In this document: positions 4,015-62,170 of the stretch, in pieces
Layout: each line of letters starts with the position of its first letter
Position numbering within the stretch: position 1 is the stretch's first letter
Source: Dendrobates tinctorius
Taxonomy: Eukaryota
DNA length: 64,000 nt
Assembly (NCBI RefSeq): GCF_039654945.1
Contig: NW_027361690.1
Span: 19,654,001-19,718,000 of the forward strand
Reading direction: 5' to 3'
The notes under the pieces: generated by a model
Seen by the model: only the letters and a program-made list of their open reading frames with translations
Database searches by the model: none
Told to the model about the DNA's origin: nothing
Translations under genes and position numbers: made by a program

Positions 4015-5650
<1,636 letters not shown>

Positions 5651-19300: not shown

Positions 19301-20493
19301 ATTATGCACACTATCTCCATCTCTCTGTTATGCACTGTCCAGCTCTCTATTATGCACACTCTCCATCTCTCTATTAGCCACACTCTCCAGCTCTCTATTA
19401 TGCACACTCTCCATCTCTCTATTATGCACATTCTCTCCATCTCTCTGTTATGCACTCTCTTCAGCTCTCTTTTATACATACACTCCATCTCTCTATTATG
19501 CACATTCTCTCTATCTCTCTGTTATGCACACTCTCCATCTCTCTTTTATACACACACTTCACCTCTCTATTATGCACACTCTCCATCTCTCTATTATGCA
19601 CACTCTCCATCTATCATACACACTCTCCAACTCTCTATTATGCACACTCTCCATCTCTTTATTATGCACACTCTCCAGCTCTCTATTATGCACACTCTCC
19701 AGCTCTCTATTATGCACAATCTCTCCATCTCTCTATTATACACACTCTCCATCTCTCTATTATGCACACTCTCCATCTCTCTACTATGCACACACTCCAC
19801 CTATCTATTATGCACACTCTCCATCTCTCTATTATGCACACTCTCCATCTATCATGCACACTCCCTATCTCTCTTTTATGCACACTCTCCATCTCTCTAT
19901 TATGCACACTCTCTATCTCTCTATTATGCACACTCTCCATCTCTCTATCATACACACTCTCCATCTCTCTATTATGCACACTGTCCATCTCTCTATTATG
20001 CACACTCTCCATCTCTCTATTATGCACACTCTCCAGCGCTCTATTATGCACACTCTCCAGCGCTCTATTATGCACACTCTCCAGCGCTCTATTATGCACA
20101 CTCTCTCCATCTCTCTATTATACACTCTCCATCTCTCTATTATGCACTCTTCATCTCTCTACTATGCACACACTCCACCTCTCTATTATGCACACTCTCC
20201 ATCTCTCTATTATACACACTCTCCATCTATCATGCACACTCTCCATCTCTCTTTTATGCACTCTCTCCATCTCTCTGGTATGCACACTCTCTATCTCTCT
20301 ATTATGCACACTCTCCATCTCTCTATCATACACACTCTCCATCTCTCTATTATGCACAGTCTATCTCTCAGTTATGCACACTCTCCATCTCTCTACTATG
20401 CACACACTCCACCTCTCTATTATGCACACTCTCCATCTCTCTATTATGCACACTCTCCATCTATCATACACACTCTCCTCTCTATTATGCACA
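16319..20493. repeat. 24-bp minisatellite (ATTATGCACACTCTCCATCTCTCT)n, left part
   Basis: Directly visible. It explains the 8-aa periodic ORFs (MHTLHLSI). Confidence 0.98.
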
Positions 20494-21521
20494 TGTGGTG
20501 CCCTCAGGAGTATGGTCGCCACAATGGCATTGCCTTCCTCCAGGGAGGGTGATGTCATGCTTGGATGCAAGGAAGGGTCTCTCTAGCAGTTAATCATTTA
20601 CATGCAACACAGCTCCCACTCCGGGCCAGCAGAGGGAGCTCTGAACCAGAATTGGGGGAGGAGTGCTCTCTGAGGGCCAGGAGGGGGAAATGAGGAGTGA
20701 GTGTGAGGAGGGCAACGTGTGTAGACGTGTGGAGAGAAGCTGGAGGTTGAGCTGAGGAAAGAGAGCTCCCTCCCAGTGATAGCGCATGATCTGGAGCCTG
20801 GTCTCCACGGTTGTATGGATACTGAAGGTCCTGCAACAGAAACCAGAGAAATAGGAAGCTGTAAATGCTTTATTTACAACTAAGACTCGGAGGCACAACA
20901 GCGACGGGTGAGCCAAGAGAGATAGAGGGCTACAGCTGTCTGCCATACGAGGTAGTTCTAAGAGAAGATAAGAAGGAGGAACTTCAGTGTAACACTGTAC
21001 TGCATGTACCTCAAGCCAGCGCTAGGAATAAGACTACACAACCCATCTGATAGAGAGATCCCTGAGTTGCTTCCAGGCTAGCCTGCTCCTGTGCCATCTG
21101 TAATCAGGACACTGGACTACGTTTGCCAAGTAAAGGTGAAGAAACTGCACCCTGTTGTGTCCTTGCCTCCTTCCTGCAACATCCTCAGCACTGCTACATC
21201 TCTGTGCCAAACACTGCACCCTCTTCCTAAACATTCCGCTACACTTCCCTGGGACCAACAGCCCTACCTGTGGAGGGCTACAACATCATTGCTGAACTAC
21301 ACCATCTGTCCCAGAGGATCTGTCTGCAGCGTCGGCTTAACACCTCCCTTGCCGAACACCACAGGTGGCGTCACGAATCACTTATAAACTTTATTCCCAA
21401 CTCAACCCCTGTTACATGGGTGCCCAGGGCTACGGATCGGGACACCGCTGCTGTGACATTCCCCTCTGAAAGACCGGCCCGGTACCGAGTACCCCACAGC
21501 CCTGAGAGGGCGACCCATTTT

Positions 21522-23002: not shown

Positions 23003-26000
23003 GTGGTGATTGACGGCATCCCCATGAACGCTTTGCTGGACACTGGCTCCCAGGTGACCACTATGCCCTATATCCTCTACAAGCGGTATTGGGCTGACTC
23101 TGAACTCACCCGTGGCCCAACTGATGAACTAACAGTAGTTGCCAGTAATGGTCAGTCTTTACCACAAGTGGGATGTAAAGAAATTACTGTTAAAGTGGGG
23201 AGGGTGGAGTTAAGATCTCAAGGTCTGATAGTTGTGGATATTGATCGACAAGAATGTAATCCCATGATGACTCTTGGTACAAATGTAATTGAAAATTGCC
23301 TTTCCGAGGTTATTGTCTTGTTGCAACAGGTGGCTGAGACTGCTGGTTCCAGTGAACAACGAGTCCTGCAGAAGGAGATCAAGGCCCTGATGCAAAGACA
23401 GCAGGTAGAACTCTCTGGCGGAGAAATTGGAAGCGTCAGAGTGAGTGATGCTTTCCCCCATTGCAATACCCACCAGATGTGAAATGTTGATTTGGTGTTG
23501 GGCAGCTATAGGTCTCAGAGGAAAAGATTACCAGGCATTGGTAGAGCCAGTATACTCTGATAGCAGGCCCACTGTCCTGACAGTCAGAGGGGTAGTTGAT
23601 GTACGTAAAGGGAGAGTACCTGTACGCCTTTTGAATTATGGGGAGGAGAAGGCCACAATAATAATATACAATAATATAATGCAATGCAGGCAGCAGAGCC
23701 CTTGGTCTCATCCGACCAGGTGGAGGACAATGGCTCTGTAAAGCAGCTGAGGAGTGGTGCCAGCAACTGCAGGTGAGGACTGAGGCTACTTTCACACTTG
23801 CGTTTTTTTTTGCGATGCGCACCGTGCGCAGAGCAAACGCACATAAAAAACGCATCATGCGTTTGTGTGCTTTTTTTGCAGGTTTTGGTGCTTTTTGTTG
23901 CGCATACGTATGCGCACGCAGACTATAATGGGTGTTTAGCTGTAAAAAAAACACATTGCACCTATGCGCACCCATGTAAAAGATAGGGGAAAAAACGCAT
24001 GCTTTTTTTGCGATAAAAAAACGCAAGTGTGAAACCAGCCTGACTCTACACCTTCATACCAGAAAAATGGGGTTTACAGGGTGACCCAGGAATATGAGCG
24101 GGTGTTCAGTAAACACCCTCTGGATTTTGAGAGGGCAAAGGGGGTTCAACATCATATCCCCACTGGAGATAATCCACCCATTAAAGAAAGGTACCGGCCT
24201 ATACCCCCAACACAATACCAATGTGCTAAAAGTATGGTGAGAGAGATGAAGGAAGCAGGGGTCATCAGAGACAGTTGTAGCCCCTGGGCAGCCCCAATAG
24301 TTTTTGTAAAGACAAAGGACGGTACCATGAGAATGTGTGTTGATTACAGGAAAATTAACAGCATTACACATAAAGATGCCTACCCATTACCCAGAATTGA
24401 AGAGTCCTTAGCTGCACTTAAAACTGCTAACTATTTTTCCACCTTAGCTCTCACTAGTGGGTATTGGCAGGTTCCAGTGGCAGAGGCAGACAAGGAGAAA
24501 ACAGCATTTACCACCCCAATGGGTCTCTGTGAGTTCAACTATATGCCATTCGGGCTCTGCACTGCCCCAGGAACATTTCAACAGCTGATGGAGTGCTGCC
24601 TGGGACACATGAACTTTGAGACAGTCCTGTTGTACCTTGATGATGTCATTGTTTTCTCCAAGACTTATGAAGACCATCTGGAGCACCTGGCTGAGGTGTT
24701 TGAAGCCTTGTCCAACTTTGGCCTGAAGGTGAAGCCTTCCAAATGCCACCTCCTGAAGCCCAAGGTACAGTACCTCGGTCATGTAGTGAGTGCAGAAGGT
24801 GTGGCACCAGATCCTGACAAAGTCCCAGTCATCTGGGACTGGCCGAAGCCGAGCAACCTCCATGAAGTATGCCAATTCCTCGGGTTGGTAGGCTACTACC
24901 GAAGGTTCATCAAAGGCTTCACTGAAATAGCCACTCCTATGCAAAATCTTCTGGTGGGGCATTCCAAGAAAGCCAAACAGAAGAATTCCACATTTGAATG
25001 GACTGAGGAGTTGGAGAGGTCCTTCACCCGACTGAAGATGGCTCTCACAGGAGATGAAGTTCTGGCCTACCCATATTATGACCAGCCCTTTGTGTTGTAT
25101 ACCGATGCCAGCAACGTGGGACTGGGAGCAGTACTGTCACAGGTACAGAATGGCAAAGAAAGAGTGATCTCCTACACCAGCAGGAAGCTTTGTCCCACTG
25201 AAAGGAACCCTGACAACTACAGTTCCTTCAAGCTGGAGTTCCTCGCCATAGTCTGGGCTGTGACTGAAAGATTCAAGCATTACCTAGCTTTCGCCAAGTA
25301 TACCATCTTCACGGACAACAACCCGTTGACTCACTTGGAAACTGCAAAACTGGGTGCACTGGAGCAGCGATGGATGGCTCGGCTGTCTAACTATGAGTTT
25401 ACCATCAAGTACCGAGCAGGGCACAAGAATGCCAATGCTGATGCGCTGTCCAGAATGCCTAATCTGCCAGATGCAGGAGAAGACCCTGAGGCTCTTGAAG
25501 AAATAGAGTTACCTCCCTTCCACCGGCCAATTGCAGCCCAACGTGCCCAAGGAGTGAGAAACAGATGGTCTGGCTTGAGAGAGGCCACCATAAATCCATT
25601 GCCTCATCATGAGTGGGCAGAAATGCAGGATAGTGACCCCGCAGTCCACCTGGTGAAGGAGCTACTGTAGCAAGCTGACTCACGCCCAGAGTCGGATGCT
25701 CCTGAAGAAACCCAGCAGTTGTGGAAGGAAAGAGGTCGGCTGTTCATTTATGAAGGAAAGCTGTGTCAGAGGAGTATCAATGCCCGCACTCATGAGCTGG
25801 TCTGGCAGGTGGTAGTCCCAAAGAGAGAGGCATCAATGGTCTTGGAAGCATACCACAATGGAGCTGGCCACTTCGGATGGAAGAAGTTGGAAGCATTGCT
25901 CCGGGAGAGATTCTACTGGGCTGGTATGAGGAAAGCCATTGAAAGGTGGTGCCGGGAGTGTGGACAATGTAACCTGCGCAGAAAGGATCGAAACAGCCAG

Positions 26001-29437: not shown

Positions 29438-31590
29438 TATATGCTCTGCTAGCCGGCGGATGTAAACACTTTGAATGGAGTAGCAAAGCTTCTAATAGAA
29501 GCTGTTCTGCAGTACCCGGCAGCAGTCACTACACACTGGATGGATCAGCACTTTGATGTTCTATTCAAAGCCTTTACATCTGATGGTCGGAAAAGCAAAT
29601 GACAGTTGCTGGGTGTTGGGCCCACCTAATCTGATATTGATGACCTTTACAGTGGACAAGTCATCAATATGTTGTCACCGGACAACCCCCGCTATATGTC
29701 CATCTCACATTGAAGGTCTATTTTTGGGAAATCTATTGTGACAGTAGTAGTAACAGATCTACAATGCCTTCTCCTTCCAGAACAAAAAGTCAATTTTTAG
29801 AGATTTCACGGGTACCAAGAATGTTCAAAGCATATCAGCACTGATAAATCAGTACACGAGACACTATAGTACAAGTATAATAGGGAGATGCTGACCCAAC
29901 ACGAGGTATAAGCATATAATTTATGACCGAAGCTGCACAATTATATTTAATAACTGTGCTATGGGACACAAACAAGGCCATATAACTAGTGTGGTCAGCC
30001 TGGTTTAGTAGGCTTAGACCCCCTACATCTTACAGAGCCAATGGGTGAGGTTTTATTGCTGACCATAGTAACATCTGAAAGAGGTTTTCCCCAAGTTTAT
30101 GTGGAATTATAACATGGATTTATGCCTCATCCCTCCATTGTGTACTACAAGCAGTTTCTATGAAAAATGTCCTTTACTTTAACTAAAAACTATCACCAGA
30201 TCAAAACTGCCCACTATTTTGTTCGGTTTACTTTACTCCCCTGAGTACTAAGTATTCCACTTTATAACATCCGCCAAATGGTTCCAGGGATATGGGTTAA
30301 TTTCTTGTTGGTCTTTACCAATGGGGAGTGGCTCGTTGAGTAGCCAACATACCACGCTCCTTTGTAAAGACTAGAAAATTTCCCACTAAATATAAAAGCC
30401 AACATCTTTGGAACTGTATGGTAGATTTAAAAATAAATAAATAAATAAAAAACTGAATACTCAATCGAGGCGCGGGGGAAGACATAGAGCAACAACTGGC
30501 AACAAGTACTCTTTAAAATTAACCTGACAGCTGATACGTGCTGCCTGATCCACGGGCAGCATGTATCAGACACTGGCTGTGTGATCTCAGACAGGGATGT
30601 TTGACTGTGAAATGCTGCTTAGTTTAAATGCCGCTGGGGACCGAGCAGCACTGGAAATTAGTCGGACAGTGCTTCTTCACGCCCGTTGCCCGAGAGTGAC
30701 AGGTCTTTGCCTATACGCGCACGTTCATGAGCCTCATTCACTTGATTTCAAATATTCTGAGTTATTACTTCCCCTACTGACTACAGTGTACACTACATCA
30801 CAAGTGAATTCAAATAGTTATAGGCAGTCTGTCACACACCCCAAAATGATAAAAATCATACTAGCACTATATGTTACCGGTAGAGTGCATAAGAAAATAA
30901 TTTAAATTCATATGCAAATGAGGGGACTTCTGTGCACCCATCACATGGCCAAGAGCTTGCTACACGGCTATACCCCTTATTTTGCATGTTGGGCTCTTCC
31001 CTGCCTCTGATTGTCAGCACTCATTTCCTAGAGCAAGTGCTGCCTGAAGTCAGCTGGTATGTGTGTGCATACATACCTGCTACACTTCCAGGTGTATCAG
31101 AGAAGCCAGCGGCCTCAGCAGAGAGGAGAATGGAAGAGAACACACCTGGTCACTGTGTGCGAGGGGAAAAATGGGGAACAATGCATCTGGCCACTGTGCG
31201 AGTGGGGAACAATGGAGAAAAACGCAACGGACCACTGTGTGCACAGGAAGTAAGGGAGGAGAACGCACCAGACCACTGGGTGGATGGGGAGAAAGGGAGG
31301 AGAACGCACCTGGCCACTGTGTGCATGGGGAACAAGGGAGAAGAATTCATCCGGCCACTGTAGGCGTGGGAAGCAAGGGAGGAGAACGCACCTGGCCACT
31401 GTGTGCAAGGGGAGAAGGGAGGAGAATGCATCTCGCCACTGTGTGCACAGGGAGCGATGTAGAAGAACGCAACGGACCACTGTGTGCACAGGAAGTAAGG
31501 GAGGAGAACGCACCAGACCACTGGGTGCATGGGGAGAAAGGGAGGAGAACGCACCTGGCCACTGTTTGCGTGGGGAACAAAGCAGAAGAA

Positions 31591-31961
31591 CACAGCAGCC
31601 CCACCCTGCCCCAAGCTTTATTTAATTGTGCACCTGTATCTGAACCTGCATTGCCCTTCATCTATGCTTGCTGGTCAGGCAATGTGTGGAGGCTAAACCT
31701 GACACGTCTGCATTCAGACCTGGTTGGCCTTCATCCGCACTTGCCTTTTCTGGCATCATGGGAGCGATCCAGAAATGCTCAGGTACGGATTGCATTTAAA
31801 GTGGTCTTGCTTTTAATGTATCTACGAGGCCATAATGGCACAGTGTTTATTAAAAACGTAGAGTAGGACCCCCCACATGAGATTGCCTTGGCGCGGCGGG
31901 GTGGCTCAGTTGAATTGATCAATTTTTTTGCTAAATATCTCATTTTGAATACAGTTCTTTT
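31591..31961 (+). mobile_element. 371-bp non-coding insertion carrying a structured-RNA motif, flanked by a 166-bp perfect duplication
   Basis: 31425-31590 is identical to 31962-32127. Motif at 31864-31943. Confidence 0.75.
31864..31943 (+). ncRNA. Candidate HDV/CPEB3-like ribozyme motif
   Basis: ACCCC pairs with GGGGU; AUGAGAU pairs with AUCUCAU; GCC-UUGGCGC-GGC hairpin; hairpin centred on UUGAUCAA; GCUAA before the closing helix. Confidence 0.5.
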
Positions 31962-33418
31962 AATGCATCTCGCCACTGTGTGCACAGGGAGCGATGTAGA
32001 AGAACGCAACGGACCACTGTGTGCACAGGAAGTAAGGGAGGAGAACGCACCAGACCACTGGGTGCATGGGGAGAAAGGGAGGAGAACGCACCTGGCCACT
32101 GTTTGCGTGGGGAACAAAGCAGAAGAATTCATCCGGCCACTGTGTGCGCGGGAAGCAAGGGAGGAGAACGCACCTGGCCACTGTGTGCAAGGGGAGAAGG
32201 GAGGAGAATGCATCTGGCCACTGTGTGCACAGGAAGCGATGTAGAAGAACGCAACGGGCCACTGTGTGACCGGGAAGCAAGGGAGGAGATTGCACCCGGC
32301 CACTGTGTGAATGGGGAGCAAGGGAGGAGAACGCAACTGTCCACTCTGTGCGTGGGGAGCAAGGGAGAAGAATTCATCTGGCCAATATGTGCGCAGGGAG
32401 CAACAGAGGAGAACGCACCTGGCTACTGTGTGCGTGGGGAGCAATGGAAAAGAACACATCGGGCCACTATGTGGATCGGGAGCAAGGGAGGAGAACGCAC
32501 CTGGCCACTGTGTGCAAGGGGAGAAGGGAGGAGAATGCATCTGGCCACTGTGTGCACAGGGAGCGATGTAGAAGAACGCAACGGGCCACTGTGTGACCGG
32601 GAAGCAAGGGAGGAGATTGCACCCGGCCACTGTGTGAATGGGGAGCAAGGGAGGAGAATGTAACTGTCCACTGTGTGCGTGGGGAGCAAGGGAGAAGAAT
32701 TCATCTGGCCACTATGTGCGCAGGGAGCAACAGAGGAGAACGCACCTGGCTATTGTGTGCGTGGGTAGCAATGGAAAAGAACACATCGGGCCACTATGTG
32801 GATGGGGAGCAAGGGAGAACGCACCTGACCACTGTGTGCATGGGGAACAAGGGAGAATTCATCCGGCCACTGTGTGCACGGGAAGCAAGGGAGGAGAACG
32901 CACCTGGCCACTGTGTGCAAGGAGAGAAGGAAGGAGAATGCATCTGGCCACTGTGTGCACAGGAAGCGATGGAAAAGAACACATCGGGCCACTATGTGGA
33001 TGGGGAGCAAGGGAGGAGAACGCACCTGGCCACGGTGTGTGCAGGTGGCTGGGCACAGGCAGTGTCAGTGCAGACAAGCACACACAATGATTACCTTTAT
33101 GCAGAGCTCACTCTGGGAAGCGAGCGTTGTCAATCAGGAGTGGGGGGGAAACCTCCAACATTGAAAATTAGGTCACATAATAGTGCACTGAGTTCTTGGC
33201 CACTCCAAGAGTGCACCAAAGTGCTCTCATTTACAAACAAATTAAAAGTTATTTTCTCAGGCAGTGTACTGGTAACAGGTAAAGTGCTAGTATGAGTTTT
33301 ACAGGGGCTAAGTTCCCTACATCACACTATAACTCATTTAAAAATACAATTTAGGGGCAAAAGACTTCTCTTAAGTCTCGCAGCACTCCTTCAAGCGCAT
33401 AATAAATATATATATATA

Positions 33419-35021: not shown

Positions 35022-36432
35022 TATATAAAAAAGTATCTATCTAATCCAGGAAAAAAGGTAGCAGACCAATCCCTTGTAAGTGAAAAACCATCCCTTTTTA
35101 TTCACCCATAATATAAATGTGTTTTAGATCCAAACAGAATACTGAGCCTTCCATTAGCTTCCTTTTTTTCACAGGGATTACATTTTTTGGACATTTGGAT
35201 ACATTTCCTGGGGCTTGCACCCACATATATACAAGTGCTGCTGTAATTGTTTTTTATTTCTTTCTTTTACATCTATCATGTATCTATTATCTATCTATCT
35301 ATCTATCATCATTCTTTGTTCCTAAATTCTATTATACCACTATATTCCCATATATAACAGTGCCAGATTACAAAACTGACACTGCAGGAATATTCGGACT
35401 TGCTGGGATTTACTTGACTGCTTTCTCCTCCTGGAATGCGCCTCGCTTCCATACTCCAAGTATTTAGGTAACCTCCGGTTTATCGTGATGCAATATACGT
35501 CAGAGAGACGCCAACTGCACCCGATAAAGTATGTCCATATACATCAGCCTTGTTTTAAACAAAAGTATTTGGAAAAATGCGCTCTCTAAAATAATTCACT
35601 TTTATTATCTGTTAGAAAAAAAAAATCTGCACATAGCTGACATAGTTTGGCACGAGCGCTCTATATCCTGTCATTTTTATGCAGACTGTCAGAACAATTC
35701 TTGAGCTTAATCTCTGTCAGGGATCCCATAGCAATTCCACAGTAACAGAGAAATGACACCATGGAATCAGTGTAATATTACAGCATCGGACGCGTCACTG
35801 AACATGACACCTTAACTCATTCAACATGCTTAACACTGCAATTAGCATTTTCCATCTAATTTCCAAATAAATATTGCAATCATATTTTGTATCTATTTAA
35901 AAAGTTCTGTGCACCCAAACCGATATGACAGTAAACCTATCCAACCCCTTCTAATATCTGCATTCCATATAAGCCTGTGTGAGTGAGAACAAGAGCTAGC
36001 AGTGAAGGAAATCTCTACTCATGATGTAAAGGTCCACTCCCCAGTTTTGTGTCATCGACATGATATAACATCTTGATCCCAGTGCTTGCGCCATATGGAG
36101 CCCACCCTAGTGATCAAGGCAGAAAGCCCCCAACAATGGCATTCATTTAAAGATCCCTAAGCATCTCTGGACAATGACACAGGACTTAGATCTGGCACGG
36201 TTTAGTGGTGCTGGCACCTTGATAGAACTGTGCCAGGAGGCATTATTTCATAGTTATACCCAGCATACATGAAGTTCCTGTCATCACTTTACTAGAGATA
36301 CGGTACCTGCTTCAAATCTGCACCCACAAAATAAATAATATAAATAAAATAAAAAATGGTTACATATGTGCATATAAATAGTGAAGATATTGCCAATAAA
36401 CTCAATTCATAATCATTAGACAATACACATGG

Positions 36433-36565
36433 NNNNNNNNNNNNNNNNNNNNNNNNNNNNNNNNNNNNNNNNNNNNNNNNNNNNNNNNNNNNNNNNNNNN
36501 NNNNNNNNNNNNNNNNNNNNNNNNNNNNNNNNNNNNNNNNNNNNNNNNNNNNNNNNNNNNNNNNN
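36433..36565. other. Assembly gap (133 N)
   Basis: Run of N. Confidence 1.
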
Positions 36566-36593
36566 GACAGATAGATAATAGATAGAAGATGGC

Positions 36594-36648
<55 letters not shown>

Positions 36649-36689
36649 CTGTAGATAGATAGAGGATGGCATAGATAGGGGATAGACAA

Positions 36690-36733
<44 letters not shown>

Positions 36734-37029
36734 CAGATAGGAGATAGATAGTTGATAGATATAGAATTATATATAAAGATAGAGATAGATAGATAGATAG
36801 ATGGCATAGATAGGGGATAGATAGATAGATATATAGATAGATAGATAGATAGATGGCATAGATAGGAAATAGATAGATAGATAGTATAGATAGGATATAG
36901 ATAGATAGATAGATAGATAGATAGATGGCATAGATAGGAGATAGATAGATGGCATAGATAGGAGATAGATAGATAGGAGATAGATAGCATAGATAGGAGA
37001 TAGATAGATAGATAGATGGCATAGATGGC

Positions 37030-37088
<59 letters not shown>

Positions 37089-37129
37089 CTGTAGATAGAT
37101 AGAGGATGGCATAGATAGGGGATAGACAA

Positions 37130-37179
<50 letters not shown>

Positions 37180-37423
37180 GGCAGATAGGAGATAGATAGT
37201 TGATGGATATAGAATTATATATAAAGATAGATATAGATAGATAGATATATAGATAGATAGATAGATAGATAGATAGATGGCAGATAGGAGATAGATAGAT
37301 AGATGGCATAGATAGGGGATATATAGATAGATAGATGGCATAGATAGGAGATAGATAGATAGGAGATAGATAGATAGATAGATGGCATAGATAGGAGATA
37401 GATAGGAGATAGATAGATAGCAG

Positions 37424-37492
<69 letters not shown>

Positions 37493-37541
37493 CTGTAGAT
37501 AGATAGAGGATGGCATAGATAGGGGATAGACAAATAGATAA

Positions 37542-38790: not shown

Positions 38791-40145
38791 GGGGTGAGGA
38801 GACTCTGGGGGTGAGGAGACCCTGGGGGTGAGGAGACTCTAGGGGTGAGGAGAGCCTGGGGGTGAGGAGACTCTAGGGGTGAGGAGACCCTGGGGTGAGG
38901 AGACTAGGGGTGAGGAGAGCCTGGGGGTGAGGAGACCCTGGGGTGAGGAGACTCTAGGGGTGAGGAGACCCTGGGGTGAGGAGACACTAGGGGTGAGGAG
39001 ACCCTGGGGGTGAGGAGACCCTGGGGGTGAGGAGACACTAGGGGTGAGGAGACACTGGGGGTGAGGAGACTAGGGGTGAGGAGAGCCTGGGGGTGAGGAG
39101 ACCCTGGGGTGAGGAGACTCTAGGGGTGAGGAGAGCCTGGGGGTGAGGAGACTCTAGGGGTGAGGAGACCCTGGGGTGAGGAGACTAGGGGTGAGGAGAC
39201 TAGGGGTGAGGAGACCCTGGGGTGAGGAGACTAGGGGTGAGGAGACCCTGGGGTGAGGAGACTCTAGGGGTGAGGAGACCCTGGGGTGAGGAGACACTAG
39301 GGGTGAGGAGACACTAGGGGTGAGGAGACCCTGGGGGTGAGGAGACCCTAGGGGTGAGGAGACCCTGGGGGTGAGGAGACACTAGGGGTGAGGAGACACT
39401 GGGGGTGAGGAGACTAGGGGTGAGGAGAGCCTGGGGGTGAGGAGACTCTAGGGGTGAGGAGACCCTGGGGTGAGGAGACTCTAGGGGTGAGGAGAGCCTG
39501 GGGGTGAGGAGACTCTAGGGGTGAGGAGACCCTGGGGTGAGGAGACTAGGGGTGAGGAGACTAGGGGTGAGGAGAGCCTGGGGGTGAGGAGACCCTGGGG
39601 TGAGGAGACTAGGGGTGAGGAGACCCTGGGGTGAGGAGACTCTAGGGGTGAGGAGACCCTGGGGTGAGGAGACACTAGGGGTGAGGAGACACTAGGGGTG
39701 AGGAGACCCTGGGGGTGAGGAGACACTAGGGGTGAGGAGACACTGGGGGTGAGGAGACTAGGGGTGAGGAGAGCCTGGGGGTGAGGAGACTCTAGGGGTG
39801 AGGAGACCCTGGGGTGAGGAGACTCGGGGTGAGGAGACCCTGGGGGTGAGGAGACTCTGGGGGTGAGGAGACCTAGGGGTGAGGAGAGCCTGGGGGTGAG
39901 GAGACACTAGGGGTGAGGAGACACTAGGGGTGAGGAGACCCCGGGGGTGAGGAGACCCTAGGGGTGAGGAGACCCTGGGGGTGAGGAGACACTAGGGGTG
40001 AGGAGACCCTGGGGGTGAGGAGACTCTAGGGGTGAGGAGATCCTGGGGGTGAGGAGACTCTAGGGGGTGAGGAGACCCTAGAGTTGAGGAGACTCTAGGG
40101 GTGAGGAGACTCTAGGGGTGAGGAGACCCTAGGGGTGAGGAGACC
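38789..40145 (+). repeat. G-rich 15-17 bp minisatellite (GGGGTGAGGAGAC...)n
   Basis: Directly visible; G4-5 runs in nearly every unit. Confidence 0.97.
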
Positions 40146-40494
40146 TCTGGGATCCGGGTCACTTCTCTCTGGAGACACTGGGTTTGCTCTGATGCAGGAC
40201 ATCTTAAAGGGCACTGCTACTTAAAGGGAATCCTACACCGCCAACACTGAAATGGAACCATTAATACATTCATGTAGGAGACTTAGACTCTATAGAAATT
40301 ATACTTGTGTTAAAGATTTTGATTATTTTGCCCAAAATGACCGTAGGTAAAGCAGGATGCCGATAATAGGGAAGAAAGCAATGATGGAGAAGGGAGAGTC
40401 AGCGCCTCCATCATGCTTCCTCTGACACAGGGTCAAACTGGCCCACCGGAGAACTGGAGGATTAGCGCAGCGGGCTTGATGACGTCACTACAAC

Positions 40495-40850
40495 AACATG
40501 GAAGGCTATGTGGGCCATTATATTATATAGAAGGCTATGTGAGACAAATTATATTATATAAAGGCAATATGGGGCCCATTACATTATATAGAAGGCTATG
40601 TAGGGGCCATTACATTATATGGAAGGCTATGTAGGGGCCATTACATTATATGGAAGGCTATATGGGGCATAATATACTGTTTAAAGAGCTATATGAGGGC
40701 CATTATACTGTTTGGAGAGTTATGTGGGAGCCATTATACTGTTTGGAGGGCTACAGGGGGATATCATACTGTTTGGGGGGCTTTGTGGGGCCATCATACT
40801 GTGTGGGTGCCATCATAATTTGTGGAGGGCTGTGTTGAGGTGTCCAACTG
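40495..40850. repeat. Degenerate ~29-bp tandem repeat (ggggccattatattatatggaaggctatgt-like)
   Basis: Directly visible; probably internal to an old non-autonomous element. Confidence 0.7.
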
Positions 40851-41086
40851 AGTTTCGGTATAATACTGAGTTGGGGGGTCACCATACTTTACCGGGTGGT
40901 TACATATGAGAAACTGGGTCTGAGCAGAAAAAGTAAATTAATGTGCATGCAAAATGTAATTGCATATGAACACATGACCTTTACACAGAGAAAACCAAAA
41001 ACAAAACACAAAACAAATATCCTGGAATAAAAAAGTAAAAAAATCTATTGCAAAAATTGCATGAAGGTAGTAATAATAGTAATAAT

Positions 41087-41170
41087 AAGGGTATTTAGTT
41101 AACATAATTTTGATCAAAATAATGTAGAAGCCATCCCGCCACGTCACGGCAACCCTTGTGGGACAGTCCT
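41087..41170 (-). ncRNA. Candidate HDV/CPEB3-like ribozyme motif, copy 1
   Basis: (CU)GUCCC pairs with GGGAU(GG); AAGGGU pairs with ACCCUU; GCC-GUGACGU-GGC hairpin; ACAU..UUUUGAUCAAAA..AUGU hairpin; ACUAA. Confidence 0.5.
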
Positions 41171-41508
41171 AACTCTTGTATTTAAAAACCTTTCCACTTG
41201 TCAAGTGACGTAAATGTGAACAAGGACAGAGGGACTGAACCACCAGTAATAGTGTAGGCCAGACAGGATGGATTTTCCAACTCAGAAACAGGGCGGTCAC
41301 ACCCTTATATGCACAGAATGCACAATGAAACAAATGAGAAACTGGGTCTGAGCAGAAAAAGTAAATTAATGTGCATGCAAAATGTAATTGCATATGAACA
41401 CATGACCTTTACACAGAGAAAACAAAACACAAAACAAATATCCTGGAATAAAAAAGTAAAAAAAATCTATTGCAAAAATTGCATGAAGGTAGTAATAATA
41501 GTAATAAT

Positions 41509-41592
41509 AAGGGTATTTAGTTAACATAATTTTGATCAAAATAATGTAGAAGCCATCCCGCCATGTCACGGCAACCCTTGTGGGACAGTCCT
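41509..41592 (-). ncRNA. Candidate HDV/CPEB3-like ribozyme motif, copy 2
   Basis: Same as copy 1 except the loop reads GUGACAU. Confidence 0.45.
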
Positions 41593-42683
41593 AACTCTTG
41601 TATTTAAAAATTTTTGCAATAGATTTTTTTACTTTTTTATTCCAGGATATTTGTTTTGTGTTTTGTTTTTGGTTTTCACCGGGTGGTTACAGTAGAGTCA
41701 TCATACCGCGCATCTGGGGAGTGCAGGATTAAAATTCACTGTGGTGGTATCATACTGTGTTTGGGAGCACTTTTGTTGACATCATACTTTATAGGGGCAA
41801 TGAACGAGGAATCTAGGGCTTCAAAAAGAGGAAAATTACTCTGTAAGTGCTGCAAAGTTGTGAGATATGCTCTTCTGTGCCTCCCCCGAATATTATTATT
41901 TTTTACTTTTTTTATGAGGGAATCCCGATTAGAACTTCTTAAACGGGAACCCATTATTTCTATATATTTCTCTGACAGGAGCGGAAGATGAGAGCTTTGT
42001 CTATGTAGGAGCCAAACACACACTATCAGAACGCGCTCTCGTCTCTCCTATCAGCATTGGCCGCCTGCTGCTGCTGGAGCGCTGTCAGTCATCACAAGAA
42101 TGATAACTGAGGTGATGGGAAAGTTCTCTTTAAAATCTTAAAGAGATTAGTACTTTACTGAATAGTGTCAAAACTTTTAAAGCTTCTGAACTAGTAGATT
42201 TCTGGGAAAGCTGGGTAACAAGATTATGGATATAACGATATGCAGAGACTTTGAAGACATAGGCTGGAAAGTGAAGGAACTGGGAGCACAGGTCGTCTTC
42301 TCATACATCCTCCCAGTGGATGGGCATGGACCAAGGAGATTGAACAGGATTCTACAGGTGATCAACTGGCTACGTCGATGATGCCATGAGCAACGTTTTG
42401 GGTTTCTTGACCATGGAGTGAATTACCTGTATGATGGACTCCTTGCTAGAGATGGGTTGCATCTTACGAAAACAGCAAAACACATATTTGGTAGACGCCT
42501 TGCTATACTCATCAGGAGAGCTTTAAACTAGAGCAATATGAGATGGGAAATATACGGCCAGGTAGAAATATTCAGCTAATGAAGTTTTTGGAGAACCCTG
42601 CTATTTATTAGAAGTGCAAAAACGGCGTGAAAGTGCAATGAGGACTGCGCTTGCTTCTGGTGGAGTACAAAGTTCTTTATTCA

Positions 42684-53582: not shown

Positions 53583-56500
53583 TTACTGCAGGTTATAGGC
53601 TTGTCGGAAGAGGTGGGTCTTCAGGCTCTTTTTGAAGGTTTCGATGGTAGGTGAGAGTCTGATATGTTGTGGTAGAGAGTTCCAGAGTAGGGGTGATGCG
53701 CGAGAGAAATCTTGTATGCGATTGTGGGAAGAGGAGATAAGAGGGGAGTAGAGAAGGAGATCTTGTGAGGATCGGAGGTTGCGTGCAGGAAAGTACCGGG
53801 AGACGAGGTCACAGATGTATGGAGGAGACAAGTTGTGGATGGCTTTGTATGTCATGGTTAGGGTTTTGTAATGGAGTCTCTGGGCAATTGGGAGCCAGTG
53901 AAGGGATTGACAGAGGGGAGAAGCTGGGGAATAGCGGGGGGACAGGTGGATTAGTCGGGCAGCAGAGTTTAGAATAGATTGGAGGGGTGCGAGAGTGTTT
54001 GAGGGGAGGCCGCAGAGCATGAGGTTGCAGTAGTCAAGGCGAGAGATGATGAGGGCATGGACTAGGGTTTTTGCAGATTCTTGGGTGAGGAATGAACGGA
54101 TGCGTGAAATATTTTTGAGTTGAAGTCGGCAGGAAGTGGAAAGGGTTTGAATATGTGGTTTGAAGGAGAGATCAGCATCAAGGATTACTCCGAGGCAGCG
54201 AGCTTGTGGGACTGGGGAGAGTGGGCAGTCATTTACTGTAATTGATAGGTTCGTAGGGGGGGTCACGTGAGATGGGGGAAAGATGATGAATTCTGTTTTG
54301 TCCATGTTGAGTTTCAGATATCTAGTGGAGAAGAAGGATGAAATAGTGGACAGACATTGAGGGATTCTGGTTAGTAGGGAGGTGATATCTGGTCCAGAGA
54401 TGTAGATCTGTGTGTCATCAGCATAAAGATGATACTGAAAGCCATGAGATTCTATGAGCTGTCCCAGGCCAAAGGTGTAAATAGAGAACAGCAGGGGCCC
54501 TAGGACTGAACCTTGTGGGACTCCGACAGATAGGGGGCGAGGTGAGGAGGTGGTGTGTGAGTGGGAGACGCTGAATGTCCGGTCTGTTAGGTATGATGAG
54601 ATCCAGGAGAGGGCCAAGTCTGTGATGCCGAGGGATGAGAGGGTCTGTAATAATAGGGAATGGTCCACTGTGTCAAAGGCAGCCGACAGGTCCAGGAGGA
54701 GGAGGACAGAGTAGTGTCGCTTGCTCTTGGCAGTTATGAGGTCATTGGTGACCTTAGTAAGGGCAGTTTCAGTGGAGTGGTGTGACCGGAAGCCAGATTG
54801 TAAGCGGTCGAAGAGGGAGCAAGAAGAGAGATGGGAGGACAGTTCAAGGTAGACGTGTTGTTCCAGTAGCTTGGAGGCGTATGGGAGAAGTGATATAGGG
54901 CGATAGCTAGATACAGAGGATGGGTCAAGAGAGGGCTTTTTGAGGATAGGTGTGATGGAGGCATGTTTAAAGCTTGAGGGGAAAACACCAGTTGTTAGTG
55001 ATAGGTTGAAGAGATGGGTTAGGGTTGGGATGAAGACTGTGGTGAGGTTTGGGATGAAGTGGGATGGGATCGGGTCGAGTGCACAGGTGGTGAGATGTGA
55101 TCTTGAGAGTAGAGTGGAGAGTCGATCTTCTGTAATGGTGGAGAAGTTGGTTTTGAAGGTGGAGGGCTGGGAAGTCGGGAGGAAGGGCTCTGGGGGTTGT
55201 TGACCAAAACTGTCCCTGATGTTATCAATTTTCTGCTTGAAAAATGAGGCAAAGTCTTCAGCTGAGATGAGTGGGGAGGGAGGAGGTGCTGGGGGGCGGA
55301 GGAGAGAATTGAAGGTGTTGAATAACTGTTTAGGGTTGTGAGACAGGGAGGATATGAGAGATGAGAAGTAGGTTTGTTTAGCTGTGGCGAGTGTGGTCTT
55401 GAAAGTAGTGAGGGACTGTTTGAATGCGATGAAATGCTCGTTGGAGTGGGATCTTTTCCATCTGCGCTCAGCAGCCCTGGAAGCTCGCCTCAGCTCTTTG
55501 GTCAGGCTGGTGTGCCAGGGCTGTCTGTTGATTTTGCGAGTTTTGGTATGTGTAAGTGGGGCAGCGGATTCCAAAGCTACAGCTATTGTGGTGTTATATA
55601 GAGCGGCAGCGTCATCCGCATTGTGTAAGGAACTTATATCTGTAAGAGGGAGGAGGGATTCGGAGAATGAGTGTAGGTCAAGGTGTTTAAGATTCCTGCG
55701 AGGGTGTGAAAGTTTGTGGGGTGGGGATTGTAGACATGGAGTGAAGAGGGAGGAGAATGTGAGCAGGTTGTGGTCAGAGAGAGGAAGAGGTGAGTTAGAG
55801 AGGTTAGATAGGGAGCAGAGGCGGGTGAAGATGAGGTCCAGTGTGTGGCCATCTTTGTGGGTGGCTGTAGAAGACCATTGAGTGAGGCCGAAGGAGGAAG
55901 TGAGAGATAGAAGTTTAGTGGCAGCTGAGAGGGAAGTGTCAATGGGGATGTTGAAGTCGCCCATGATGATAGTAGGGATGTCCGCGGAAAGGAAATGAAG
56001 TAACCAGGTGGTGAAGTGGTCAAAGAAGGTGGTGGCTGGCCCTGGGGGGCGGTAGATGACAGCCAGTTGGAGGTTGGAGGGGGAGTAGATGCGCACAGAG
56101 TGCACCTCAAAGGAAGGGAGGGTAACAGAGGGTGGCAGTGGGATTGGGGTGAAGGAGCAGGTATCTGACAGGAGAAAACCAACTCCTCCACCATGTTTGC
56201 TGCTGGGGCGGGGGGTTTGAGAAAGGTGGAAGCCGCCATACGAAAGTGCAGCAGGAGAGGCTGTGTCAGAAGGGGTGAGCCAGGTTTCGGTGATGGCGAG
56301 GAAGGAGAGTTTGGTAGTAACAAAAAGATCATGGATGTAGGAAAGCTTGTTGCAGACAGAGCGAGCGTTCCACAGAGCTCCTGTTAGTGGGACTGGGGAA
56401 GCGGGGGCTGGGTGAATGGGTATAAGGTTGGAGAGGTTACGGAAGGTTGTGATAGAGCGTGGATGGGAGGTAGAAATGACTGTGGGAATGTGGTGAGGAG

Positions 56501-56759
56501 GACCAGGATTTGGAGAGATATCACCAGCAGTGAGAAGGAGCAGAGAAAGTGTTACCAGGTGGGAGCAGGAGAGGGCATGAGGGGGCTGTCTGTGTTTGGA
56601 GACAGAGGATTGTATGTTAAGGAACAGTTTTGAGGCGGAGGTGAGGTGGATGGGGAGGATTGAAGAAGAGATGAACAGTTCCTTACTAGGAGTAGGGATT
56701 AGGGGAATTAGCAGAAAGTGAAGGATTATTGGGGTGAAAGTGAAAACAAACAGAAACAT
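53583..56759 (-). CDS. L2 APE endonuclease-reverse transcriptase, intact 1058 aa, with N-terminal 2A-like motif
   Basis: WNARS, ITETWL, GDFN, SDH; [24 protein letters not shown]; GDISPNPGP. Confidence 0.95.
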
Positions 56760-58036: not shown

Positions 58037-61020
58037 GGGAAGGGAAGCAAAAGACCAGAAAAAGCCATACACCTGACAAATGCTATTGAGAACTCTGCTA
58101 TTAGAAGTGGAAAGGAAGAACAAAGACAAAAGAATCTAATTAATAAAAATATTGGAGAAAGAGAAACCAATCACAAACTAAAATGTTTCTATACTAATGC
58201 ACAAAGCATGGGCAACAAACAAGGAGAATTGGAAATACTAACACAGGAAAAGAAATATGATGTCATTGGAATCACTGAAACTTAGTGGGACAATACACAT
58301 GATTGGAATACAAGACTAGAAGGATACAACTTATTTGCAAGAAACAGACTTGATAAACGAGGAGGGGGTGTCGCATTGTATGTTAGAAACGCGTATATCT
58401 GCACAGAGATTGACGCTTCAGAGACTGGGAGTTCTGTGGAAACTGGGCAAGAATACAAGGACAGACCAATGGAAAGGACACCATTGTAGGCATTTACTAC
58501 AGGCCGCCTGTGCAAGCTGAAGACATGTATGAACTCTTTTTGCATCAAATGGCCAAGTTCTCCAAAAAATATGACATAGTTGTCATGGGAGATTTCAACT
58601 ATCCAGACATTTGTTGGGAATCTCTCTCAGGCAAAACTAACAGGTCAAGGAAATTCTTATCCTCTCTTGCTGACAACTTTATCTTCCAAAAGGTAGGGGA
58701 GAAAACAAGGGGAACTGCTACCTTGGATCTAATCCTCATAAACAGGGAGGAAATGGTTGAGGAGGTAAAAGTGGCTGGGACCCTAGGAGGTAGCGACCAT
58801 GCTATTTTAGAATTTTGGATAACTAGAGGAGGAAGACCTGTGAAGACTCAGACGTCAAGGTTAGATTTCAGAAAGGCAGATTTTAAGGGATTCAGAAAGA
58901 GAATTGGAGGGATCCAATGGATGGATATCCTTAAAGACAAAAATGTCCAGGAAGGATGGGAAATCTTGAAAAATGAAATTCTCAAAGCACAATTGTTAAC
59001 AATTCCGAAAAGAGGGAAGAATAGGAAGCATTTAAGGAAGCCAGGATGGATGAACACAGAAATTAAGCACATGCTAAAAAGGAAGAAAAAAATGTTTATA
59101 AGTTTATAAAATGGAAAGAGGGAGGCATATCTAAAGAAGAATATAATGCTGTCTGCAGAACCTGCAGGGCACAAATCAGATTATCTAAAGCTGACAATGA
59201 ATTGAGGCTTGCAAGAGATGTCAAAAGCAATAATAAAGGTTTTTGGGGGTATGTCAAAAGTAAAAGAAAAGTCAAAGATGCTATAGGATTTTTACAGGAT
59301 GAAAATGATGAAATGGTAAGACAGGATGTTGAGAAGGCCGAACTTTTAAATTCCTATTTTGCATCTGTTTTCTCTCAGAAAGGAAATGTAACATCAACTG
59401 TTCTTCACTGTCCTATTAAGGGAATTGAAGAATCCAGGATATCTATAAACAGAAAGATAGTGAGGAAACACTTAGCTAACCTAAATGAATTCAAGTCTCC
59501 AGGTCCAGATGAATTACACCCCAGAGTACTGAAGGAGATAGCAGAAGAAATTTTTGAACCCCTCTCCATAATCTTTGAAAATTCTTGGAGAACAGGAGAA
59601 GTCCCAGAAGACTGGAGAAGAGCAAATGTTGTTCCTATCTTCAAAAAGGGAAAGAAGGTGGACCCAGGCAACTATAGGCCGGTGAGTCTGACTTCTATAC
59701 CAGGAAAGATCTTTGAACAAATTATTAAACAACATGTATGTCAGTACCTGGATAAGAATGAAGTGATTAAACAGAGTCAGCATGGGTTTGTAACTAATAA
59801 GTCATGTCAGACTAACTTAATTTCCTTCTATGATGGAATCACTGATTGGGTGGATCAAGGAAATGCTGTAGATATAGTATATCTTGACTTCAGCAAAGCA
59901 TTTGACAAAGTATCTCATACAATCCTTATTGAAAAAATGACTAAGTATGGAATGGACAAGGCAACTGTTAGGTGGATTCATAACTGGCTTAGTGATCGGA
60001 CCCAAAGAGTGGTCGTAAATGGCTACACATCCAGTTGGAAGAATGTCTCAAGTGGGGTACCACAGGGCTCTGTCCTGGGCCCTGTATTGTTCAACATCTT
60101 TATCAACGATTTAGATGAAGGAATTGAGGGTAAACTGATTAAATTTGCTGATGACACAAAGCTAGGAGGGATAGCTAATACTAGAGAAGAGAGAGAGAGG
60201 ATTCAAAAAGATATAAATAAACTGGAGAAGTGGGCAGCAACTAACAAAATGGGTTTTAACAGGGAAAAATGCAAAGTACTACATCTGGGCAATAAAAATG
60301 AAAAAAAGTATATACAGAATGGGAGGAATAGGGCTAAACAACAGCACATGTGAAAAAGACTTGGGTATACTAATAGATCACAGACTGAATATGAGTCAAC
60401 AGTGTGATGCAGCAGCAAAAAAGGCAAATGCAATTCTAGGATGTATTAACAGAAGCATACAGTCTAGATCGCGTGAAGTCATTATTTCCCTCTACTCCTC
60501 TTTGGTCAGACCTCATCTGGAATATTGTGTCCAGTTTTGGGCACCACATTTTAAAAAAGACATCAACAAACTGGAGCAAGTTCAGAAAAGAGCGACCAGA
60601 ATGGTGACCGGTCTGCAAACCCTGTCTTATGAGGAAAGGTTGCAGGATTTGGGAATGTTTAGTTTGCAAAAGAGAAGACTGAGAGGAGACTTAATAGCTG
60701 TCTACAAATATCTAAAGGACTGTCACATTGCAGAAGGATCAACTTTATTCTCATTTGCACAAGGAAAGACTAGAAGCAATGGGATGAAACTAAATGGGAG
60801 GAGACACAGATTAGATATTAGAAAAAACTTTTTGACAGTTAGAGTGATCAATGAGTGGAACAAGCTGCCACGAGAAGTGGTGAGTTCTCCTTCAATGGAA
60901 GTCTTCAAACAGAGGCTGGACAGACATCTGACTGGGATGATTTAGCGAATCCTGCTTTGAGCAGGGGGTTGGACCAGATGGCCCAGGAGGTCCCTTCCAA
61001 CTCTACGATTCTATGATTCT
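58037..61020 (+). mobile_element. CR1 LINE with near-complete, frameshifted ORF2
   Basis: [34 protein letters not shown]; ATTCTATGATTCT tail. Confidence 0.96.
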
Positions 61021-61287
61021 GCAGCAGTCGGCAAAGGCGCTCAATCAGTGAAATCCTAGGTGCATTGCACCCTGGGAAATACGAATATGCAAATAAAATC
61101 TGTGGAGCCTCATTTAAGAGTCTCAAACACAGGACTAGCCAGATCTTCCTCCAGGGAAGGACCCAGCCAAGGAGTGGCTCCTTTCGGAAACCACCATTGC
61201 CACCATATTAAGTGGCCCTTTAAGTCAATATCCAGTTCTTTACGAGTTTACAGATATCACAAGGGAAATACCAAGGCCAGGTATCCA

Positions 61288-61331
61288 TCCACAGACAGCT
61301 GTTTCGGGGTGTTTCCCCTCATCAGTGTGGA
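61288..61331 (-). ncRNA. Type I hammerhead ribozyme
   Basis: UCCACA CUGAUGA GGGG AAACA CCCC GAAAC AGCU GUC^ UGUGGA. Complete core; predicted cleavage between 61294 and 61293. Confidence 0.92.
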
Positions 61332-61688
61332 ATAGGATTCTGGCTAGGTGGGAGCAATGCCTAGTAGACCAACATCACGAAACAATCACTGACCTCAGGG
61401 AGACCAGTCAAAGAAAACACTGCGGCAGCCGGCAAAGGCGCTCAATCAGTGAAATCCTAGGTGCATTGCTCCCTGGGAAATACGAATATGCAAATAAAAT
61501 CTGTGGAGCCTCATTTAAGAGTCTCAAACATGGGACTAGCCAGATCTTCCTCCAGGGAAGGACCCAGCCAAGGAGTGGCTCCTTTCGGAAACCACCATTG
61601 CCACCATATTAAGTGGCCCTTTAAGTCAATATCCAGCTCTTTACGAGTTTACAGATATGACAAGGGAAATACCAAGGCCAGGTATCCA

Positions 61689-61732
61689 TCCACAGACAGC
61701 TGTTTCAGGGTGTTGCCCCTCATCAGTGTGGA
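61689..61732 (-). ncRNA. Type I hammerhead ribozyme, second copy
   Basis: Same fold; stem II GGGG CAACA CCCU, with G-U at the core-proximal pair. Confidence 0.85.
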
Positions 61733-62170
61733 GTAGGATTCTGGCTAGGTGGGAGCAATGCCTAGTAGACCAACATCACAAAACAATCACTGACCTCAGG
61801 GAGACCAGTCAAAGAAAACACTGCGGCAGCCGGCAAAGGCGCTCAATCAGTGAAATCCTAGGTGCATTGCTCCCTGGGAAATACGAATATGCGAGTCGTT
61901 AGAATAGCTGCTGTGTGACAAGGTCCCAACGACCGCTGAGGTCGTTTTACGGATCGCCGTATCGTTGCTGCATTGTTGAGTAGATCTTCCTGTTTGACAA
62001 CTTACTAGAGACCATGTAGCGATGTACCAGCGATCCTTACAAGGTCGTATCGTTGTCAGGATCGCTGGAGCATCGCTATGTGTAACGGGACCCTTACAGT
62101 AGTGCAGGAAGTGGTGTACGGCGTAGTTCAACAAGATGGTTTGACACTGTGAGGAGAAGAGTGGTGCACG

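Follow-up and report, generated by a model that had tools for sequence, protein, structure and literature searches.

What kind of RNA, copied by what kind of enzyme, leaves behind in a frog genome a short non-coding insert that holds more than one copy of its own unit and ends in an inverted piece? This question is raised by a 773-bp insert at positions 40905-41677 of a 64-kb stretch of DNA from Dendrobates tinctorius (contig NW_027361690.1), which we refer to at its full length as the window. We propose that the insert is a recent retrotransposition of a ~425-nt repeat with a fold of the hepatitis delta virus (HDV)/CPEB3 ribozyme type, most likely self-cleaving, and that its mobilisation was Penelope-like; to this reading we assign a probability of about two in three (0.68).

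The anatomy of the insert provides the starting point. A full unit of 428 bp is followed head-to-tail by a 5'-truncated copy of 276-278 bp and then by a 69-bp inverted arm (table 1), much as described in an initial annotation, which had recognised ~1.6 copies of a 422-428 bp unit and an inverted piece of ~67 bp at the right end. The period of 422/428 was found by repeat search and blastn; TRF was silent on it because fewer than two copies are present. The perfect 14-bp duplication reported at the same time lies exactly at both edges: its sequence, ACCGGGTGGTTACA, occurs twice in the window, at these two places, and when the insert and one duplicate are deleted in silico a 31-bp minisatellite is restored. 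The inverted arm is the reverse complement of positions 40990-41058 in copy 1 (69/69 identical) and is joined to the direct part via a 2-nt AA overlap. Between the two direct copies there is a single substitution (CpG>TpG, at 41142/41564), one 7-bp slippage-type indel at 40991-40997 in an (AAAAC)-like run and one A-run indel. Since the copies differ by no more than one substitution and slippage-type indels, and since the duplication is perfect, the insertion event is young. At the left junction, the base at 40905 is T where the corresponding unit base at 41333 is A, and target and insert share an ACA microhomology. Copy 2 terminates 20-22 nt upstream of its predicted ribozyme cleavage site.

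The 428-bp unit has a GC content of 33%. Coding capacity of the insert is rejected, the longest open reading frames (ORFs) being of low complexity and at most 74 aa, and poly-A was looked for at both ends and found at neither, so that the earlier description holds on both counts. A search for the CTGANGA hammerhead core on both strands of the insert gave no match, again as stated before, and the Rfam hammerhead models did not match the insert either. The label 'no hammerhead' is thus correct with regard to the core, but the insert is not free of ribozyme-like structure, given that each unit has an HDV/CPEB3-like fold.

The orientation of the two arms identifies the strand that served as template. 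In RNA sense, the long arm (41610 down to 40905) finishes with its 3' end against the left duplication, and the short arm, which copies unit positions 41058 down to 40990, with its 3' end against the right one; the 5' ends of both meet mid-insert. As each arm thus has the duplicated target next to its RNA-sense 3' end, the template RNA was minus-sense, and cDNA was primed by both nicked target strands. If the plus strand were the RNA sense, both arms would have to start mid-insert. The inverted piece copies sequence located away from the breakpoint, which excludes a simple snap-back. The initial annotation had deduced the minus strand from the position of the inversion, and the outward-facing 3' ends lead to the same strand; together with the anatomy, this geometry supports its view of a retroposed, non-coding insert of more than unit length. 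It had also placed a candidate ribozyme on that strand, and it is there that the HDV-type fold is found in both units.

Table 1. Positions of the insert, its folds and other features in the 64-kb window
Feature	Position	Strand	Remarks
Left target-site duplication ACCGGGTGGTTACA	40891-40904		14 bp, exact
Unit copy 1	40905-41332	RNA sense minus	Full, 428 bp
Unit copy 2	41333 to ~41608-41610	RNA sense minus	Partial, 276-278 bp, 5'-truncated, head-to-tail with copy 1
Short inverted arm	41609-41677	RNA sense plus	69 bp
Right target-site duplication ACCGGGTGGTTACA	41678-41691		14 bp, exact
31-bp minisatellite, target region	40501-40830		Resumes past the insert at ~41700-41800
Fold, copy 1	41087-41166	minus	80 nt, C1 = 41166
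P1, copy 1	41166-41160 with 41137-41131	minus	CUGUCCC / GGGAUGG
P2, copy 1	41157-41152 with 41092-41087	minus	AAGGGU / ACCCUU
P3, copy 1	41150-41148 with 41140-41138	minus	GCC / GGC, 3 bp
L3, copy 1	41147-41141	minus	GUGACGU, 7 nt, closed by P3
P1.1, copy 1	C 41130 with G 41145	minus	C37:G22 plus U38.U21
P4, copy 1	41125-41102	minus	Long hairpin
J4/2, copy 1	41101-41093	minus	UAACUAAAU; C-N-R-A motif directly before P2 3' strand; putative catalytic C (C69) = 41098
Fold, copy 2	41509-41588	minus	C1 = 41588; G25>A in L3 at 41564
Related fold	31861-31949	plus	Inside a different 371-bp insert; source of covariation
Chromovirus-type integrase with chromodomain	141-1907	+
Tc1/mariner (Sleeping Beauty-like) transposase ORF	4234-5313	-
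Tc1/mariner (Sleeping Beauty-like) transposase ORF	12575-13597	+
Long terminal repeat (LTR)-element reverse transcriptase (RT)/RNase H ORF	24081-25670	+
Long interspersed nuclear element (LINE) ORF2	53583-56759	-	Apparently intact, 1058 aa, Exo_endo_phos + RVT_1
Apurinic endonuclease (APE)+RT LINE remnant	58510-60945	+

In minus sense, 80 nt of each unit can adopt a nested double pseudoknot, in which P1 (6-7 bp), P2, P3 (3 bp) and P4 follow the order and spacing of HDV. The numbering coincides with that of CPEB3, where L3 reads U20 U21 C22 A23 C24 G25 U26 and P1.1 involves G37 and U38 (10.1101/2022.09.22.508989). The nested arrangement of P1, P1.1, P2, P3 and P4 and a J4/2 with C followed by N-R-A are common to the insert fold and to CPEB3/HDV-like ribozymes; from CPEB3 the fold keeps U21, A23-C24-G25-U26 and U38, as well as a P3 of 3 bp and an L3 of 7 nt, and the second P1.1 pair, U21.U38, is that of CPEB3 and of the Ackermannviridae ribozyme (PMC13635239). 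In contrast, the first P1.1 pair is inverted with respect to CPEB3 (C22:G37 becoming G22:C37), and the fold departs from CPEB3/HDV-like ribozymes in general by C1-G36 in place of the G1.U wobble, by G20 in this subfamily and by the absence of an Rfam model match. The G22:C37 pair is invariant in the three sequences compared (copy 1, copy 2 and a 371-bp insert elsewhere in the window), and the J4/2 motif C69-U-A-A-A-U, of putative catalytic role, is identical in the families of the 428-bp unit and of the 371-bp insert. G25 is kept in copy 1; in copy 2, CpG decay has turned it into A (G25>A), a change in L3 that probably weakens the copy 2 fold, since G25A strongly impairs a solved HDV-like ribozyme (PMC13635239). 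Minimum free energy folding of the 84-nt fold region recovers P2 and P4.

A descriptor scan of 128 kb matched only the folds of copy 1 and copy 2, compared with an average of 0.13 matches per 128 kb in 30 shuffles, which speaks for the fold but is weak alone because the descriptor was drawn up with the sequence already known. Comparison with the 371-bp insert indicates that these pairings are maintained. A covariance model trained on copy 1 and copy 2 alone, with only P2, P3 and P4 specified, found one other significant site in the window, on the plus strand at 31861-31949 (39.6 bits, E 2e-7). In the model-based alignment of the three folds, to which P1 and P1.1 were added, 96% of cells are paired, and seven pairs have changed on both sides between the 428-bp unit and the 371-bp insert (four of the six pairs of P2, two pairs of P4 and one of P1); not one of the 500 shuffles was as good, and controls with slid partners gave 0-2. 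This alignment was used in place of one made with MAFFT, which shifted P1 and P2 of the 371-bp insert by one base owing to a 1-nt deletion in that sequence. Metagenome and viral contig collections, scanned for the exact pattern of the conserved core, returned 0 matches, and the covariation therefore relies on the sequences of the window only. In contigs from another species, the 80-nt fold has three variable sites, all of them unpaired, against 21 in the adjoining upstream 123 nt (Fisher p = 0.0036). We consider it very probable that this is a genuine, conserved RNA fold with the topology of HDV, and somewhat more probable than not that it would self-cleave.

The 371-bp insert deserves description in its own right. 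It is non-coding, lies at ~31592-31962 (region 31426-32128) and is flanked by a perfect direct duplication, ~166 bp of 41-bp minisatellite. The 1-nt deletion of its fold falls in P1. Its homology with the 428-bp unit is weak and extends over ~260 nt, and its RNA-sense 3' end is only ~18 nt past the fold, unlike that of the 428-bp unit. Two further segments are common to both insert families: ~25 nt at 41167-41190, in minus sense directly 5' of C1 (…GAGUUAGGA|C), and a second motif, UCUGC..UCAGACC..GUU, at 40905-40930, exactly at the start of reverse transcription of the 773-bp insert. HDV-type ribozymes require no upstream sequence.

How might such an insert have formed? In the series of events that we envisage, the ~425-nt repeat would be transcribed as minus-strand RNA, and the fold would cut 5' of C1, tandem transcripts giving unit-length RNAs. 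Target-primed reverse transcription would then proceed from two nicks staggered by 14 bp. On the top strand, the 3'-OH (…GGTTACA) would prime the long arm at unit position 40905 and be extended over 1.65 units of a template longer than one unit, past two ribozyme sites either uncleaved or religated; the bottom-strand 3'-OH would prime 85 nt further up the RNA, at unit position 40990, with 69 nt copied, and both cDNAs would be joined at the 2-nt microhomology. Since two ribozyme sites are crossed by the cDNA, either the template had not been cut, or it had been religated or was reached through template switching. The insertion machinery would be that of a Penelope-like element, as for the 'non-LTR retrozymes', with a delta-type ribozyme replacing the hammerhead, and the element is non-autonomous, as it has no RT/GIY-YIG ORF of its own.

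Penelope-like elements make a suitable model. Their insertions are partial tandems, in many cases bordered on the 5' side by an inverted 5'-truncated copy, and show a bias towards microsatellites (PMC8557442). The purified anole Penelope element cleaves and extends both target strands, initiates reverse transcription at internal, non-homologous sites of the RNA and uses unprocessed multimeric RNA, hammerhead cleavage being dispensable in vitro (PMC11167929). Likewise, our insert combines a partial tandem and an adjacent inverted 5'-truncated copy within one duplication, with both target strands used as primers (PMC8557442, PMC11167929), has start sites non-homologous to the target and sits in a repeat array; the 371-bp delta-type insert is also located in a minisatellite. 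It differs from Penelope-like elements in that it carries neither an RT/GIY-YIG ORF nor a hammerhead, and its start sites are 85 nt apart rather than 30-40 nt.

The abundance of the unit was assessed in public sequencing runs, which were available as assembled contigs only and whose RNA labels are guesses. Summed word depth is 1e5-6e5 across the insert compared with 6-80 in the flanks, with its maximum on the fold, which shows the unit to be highly abundant in the source species; diverged relatives are present in contigs of a second species. Other copies in the contigs have opposite-strand joints at different positions. Two other contig junctions give an element boundary within ~5 nt of the left end of our insert (at 40907, and at 41346 after allowing for homology that runs a few bases into the reported flank). 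These offer a hint, thin as the evidence is, that the left end is a preferred start of reverse transcription, and to that extent they speak against the arbitrary starting point that the initial annotation had assumed for the multimer. A contig flank before 41337, considered as a third terminus, was discounted, as it resembles the unit with a ~10-nt deletion, and 'skip' joints near the flanks, considered as a possible empty site, look like minisatellite paralogues instead. One permuted contig of 535 nt, longer than one unit, stems from a run only guessed to be RNA.

A number of observations weigh against a delta-type ribozyme moved by Penelope-like machinery. The pair at the cleavage site is C1-G36 in all three sequences, not the G1.U wobble that is described as highly conserved in HDV-like ribozymes. 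In this subfamily position 20 is G, the base of our insert and of the majority of copies from the source species, and the G25.U20 reverse wobble cannot form there; the 371-bp insert and the contigs of the other species have U. Rfam searches of the locus, of the whole window and of a 111-nt slice returned nothing within the insert; no HDV-like family matched even at E<=10, and at the gathering score there was no match to an HDV, CPEB3 or drz family. The folding energies of the fold and of the whole unit are no better than those of shuffles (z 0.17, -0.30, +0.22), and as this applies to whole-unit folds of both strands, there is no viroid-like rod. The seven double-sided changes represent two lineages only, in an alignment fitted to P2, P3 and P4. 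As for the machinery, the 64-kb window contains no Penelope-like RT/GIY-YIG ORF, the only RT ORFs nearby being those of APE-type LINEs and of one LTR element, and the spacing of 85 nt between the start sites exceeds the 30-40-nt 'tail' of Penelope.

Some of these points would equally suit a minus-strand fold that is real without being a ribozyme, for example a structure of HDV-like topology to which a reverse transcriptase binds or by which it recognises the RNA. Rfam does not recognise the fold, and neither the G1.U wobble nor, in this subfamily, U20 is present in it; the cDNA passes two sites uncleaved, and cleavage by the hammerhead is dispensable for insertion of the anole Penelope element in vitro (PMC11167929). 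Nevertheless, we regard this as unlikely in view of the five helices, the 7-nt L3 with the ACGU of CPEB3, the compensated P1.1 and the C-N-R-A of J4/2 at the expected spacing, all the more since active HDV-like ribozymes tolerate varied P1.1 pairs, namely U:A/C:U or U:A/U:U (PMC13635239). If the fold does cleave, the template might have been a covalently closed, circular ~425-nt RNA, produced by ribozyme cleavage and ligation and copied 1.65 times from an arbitrary start. The HDV-type 5'-OH and 2',3'-cyclic phosphate ends are those joined by RtcB in hammerhead retrozymes (PMC7229834), the cDNA passes two ribozyme sites unbroken, and the two copies, apart from their single substitution, share private variants that set them apart from the family majority, as if one monomer had been copied twice; the 535-nt contig, from a probable RNA run, exceeds one unit. 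Yet a young, homogeneous tandem source locus explains identical units equally well, the permuted contig may just as well derive from a tandem DNA locus or its transcript, the left end may be preferred rather than arbitrary, and the unit is no more stably folded than shuffles. Moreover, autonomous linear Penelope-like elements yield the same partial tandems from multimeric unprocessed RNA. A circle is not required, because Penelope biochemistry accounts for the partial tandem, and we view it as a somewhat doubtful template, if a less doubtful idea than a non-catalytic fold; of the circular or multimeric RNA postulated by the initial annotation, it is the multimeric form that is needed.

The enzyme, rather than the template, would be different if an APE-type LINE (L1, L2 or CR1-like) had retroposed a transcript of the tandem repeat by twin priming. 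In L1 twin priming, head-to-head arms arise within one duplication, the second primer being internal on the same RNA and the arms being joined at a microhomology. Arm geometry, internal second priming and the microhomology join are all seen in our insert, and twin priming gives this head-to-head geometry with duplications of 7-20 bp; the insert departs from the L1 pattern in having no poly-A, in the copying of more than one unit and in the likely enzyme. Two APE+RT LINE ORFs are present in the window, one of them apparently intact (53583-56759), which may be an active APE-type LINE and is a candidate rival mobiliser. HDV-like ribozymes are otherwise known from the LINEs R2, RTE and L1Tc (PMC7761336). 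Against this, neither poly-A nor a microsatellite tail is present at the RNA-sense 3' end, no same-sense similarity exists between the unit and the 3' regions of the LINEs in the window, and partial tandems and a repeat-array target are traits of Penelope-like elements. The sole similarity between unit and LINE, a low-complexity TAA-rich 21-mer, is in opposite sense and was set aside. In addition, the ribozymes of R2, RTE and L1Tc (PMC7761336, PMC3185411), which are equally delta-type, serve retroelement RNA and remove upstream transcript, are located 5'-terminally in a protein-coding LINE, whose 5' boundary they set, whereas the fold of our insert is internal to a non-coding tandem unit, and the insert does not start at the cleavage site. 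A LINE as mobiliser thus seems distinctly improbable. Far less probable still is an origin at the DNA level, by capture of a satellite or extrachromosomal circular DNA fragment at a double-strand break with local inversion. The repeat is indeed extremely abundant and tandem-prone, and a broken circle of repeat DNA could give a non-integer multimer; however, the 14-bp duplication is exact and lies precisely at both edges, both arms point their RNA-sense 3' ends outward, which is what target-primed synthesis predicts, the inverted piece is away from the breakpoint and not a fold-back, and the second family member nearby is likewise flanked by a duplication.

Returning to a Penelope-mobilised repeat with a delta-type fold, its closest counterparts are the animal non-LTR retrozymes (Cervera & de la Pena 2020, PMC7229834; Li, Clavereau & Pollet 2026 preprint). 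Animal hammerhead retrozymes are now regarded as non-autonomous Penelope-like elements (bioRxiv 10.64898/2026.07.22.740005). Both they and our repeat have small, non-coding, AT-rich units (~170-400 nt in the retrozymes) with one motif of self-cleaving type per unit, occur in tandem or partial-tandem copies with duplications of >4 bp, reach very high copy numbers in amphibians and display Penelope-like insertion features; in the present case the unit is 428 bp long with 33% GC and no ORF, the duplication is 14 bp and the depth in the DNA run is enormous. What separates them is the type I hammerhead by which retrozymes are defined, absent here on both strands, the HDV/CPEB3-type fold being found instead. 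Associations of hammerheads with retrozymes and with Penelope-like elements, and of HDV-like ribozymes with LINE 5' ends, are established in the literature, LINE 5' ends being the sole retroelement location from which delta-type ribozymes are known to date. Our full-text literature searches found no description of retrozyme-like or Penelope-mobilised repeats with an HDV-type ribozyme, an absence that is not proof. We tentatively put forward, at somewhat less than even odds, that frogs carry a second, undescribed class of retrozyme, non-autonomous and Penelope-mobilised, whose unit-length RNAs would be set free, and perhaps closed into circles, through a CPEB3-like delta ribozyme whose core is inverted (C1-G36, G22:C37), in place of a hammerhead. 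If so, ribozyme modules would be interchangeable within one mobilisation system, and an abundant vertebrate retroelement would provide a plausible source population for ribozymes of the CPEB3/HDV type; the question of the origin of such ribozymes in vertebrates is in this way touched by a frog repeat. A natural variant of the HDV core, with no G1.U wobble and with an inverted P1.1, would also be usable for testing catalytic models. The young two-armed insert, for its part, would record in vivo the Penelope-style priming from both target strands, matching the biochemistry in vitro.

The remainder of the window is largely transposon debris (table 1). At 61019-61892, directly downstream of the LINE remnant at 58510-60945, a 401-bp unit is repeated 2.2 times in tandem, the copies being 96-97% alike, and a hammerhead core, CUGAUGAG, is present on the minus strand; no obvious duplication is visible at the edges of this tandem. 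Two long ORFs, at 17712-20552 (+, 946 aa) and 36292-37533 (-, 413 aa), have no Pfam match, and the occurrence of several overlapping long ORFs suggests that they are compositional or repeat artefacts. An assembly gap (N run) occupies 36433-36565. An Rfam match to mir-144 at 40595-40670 was rejected as a repeat artefact (23 bits, the gathering score being 60). Finally, the region to the left of the insert contains a GC-rich 17-bp minisatellite at 39000-40151, with ~69 copies and a higher-order period of 361 bp, after which comes the 31-bp minisatellite at 40501-40830.

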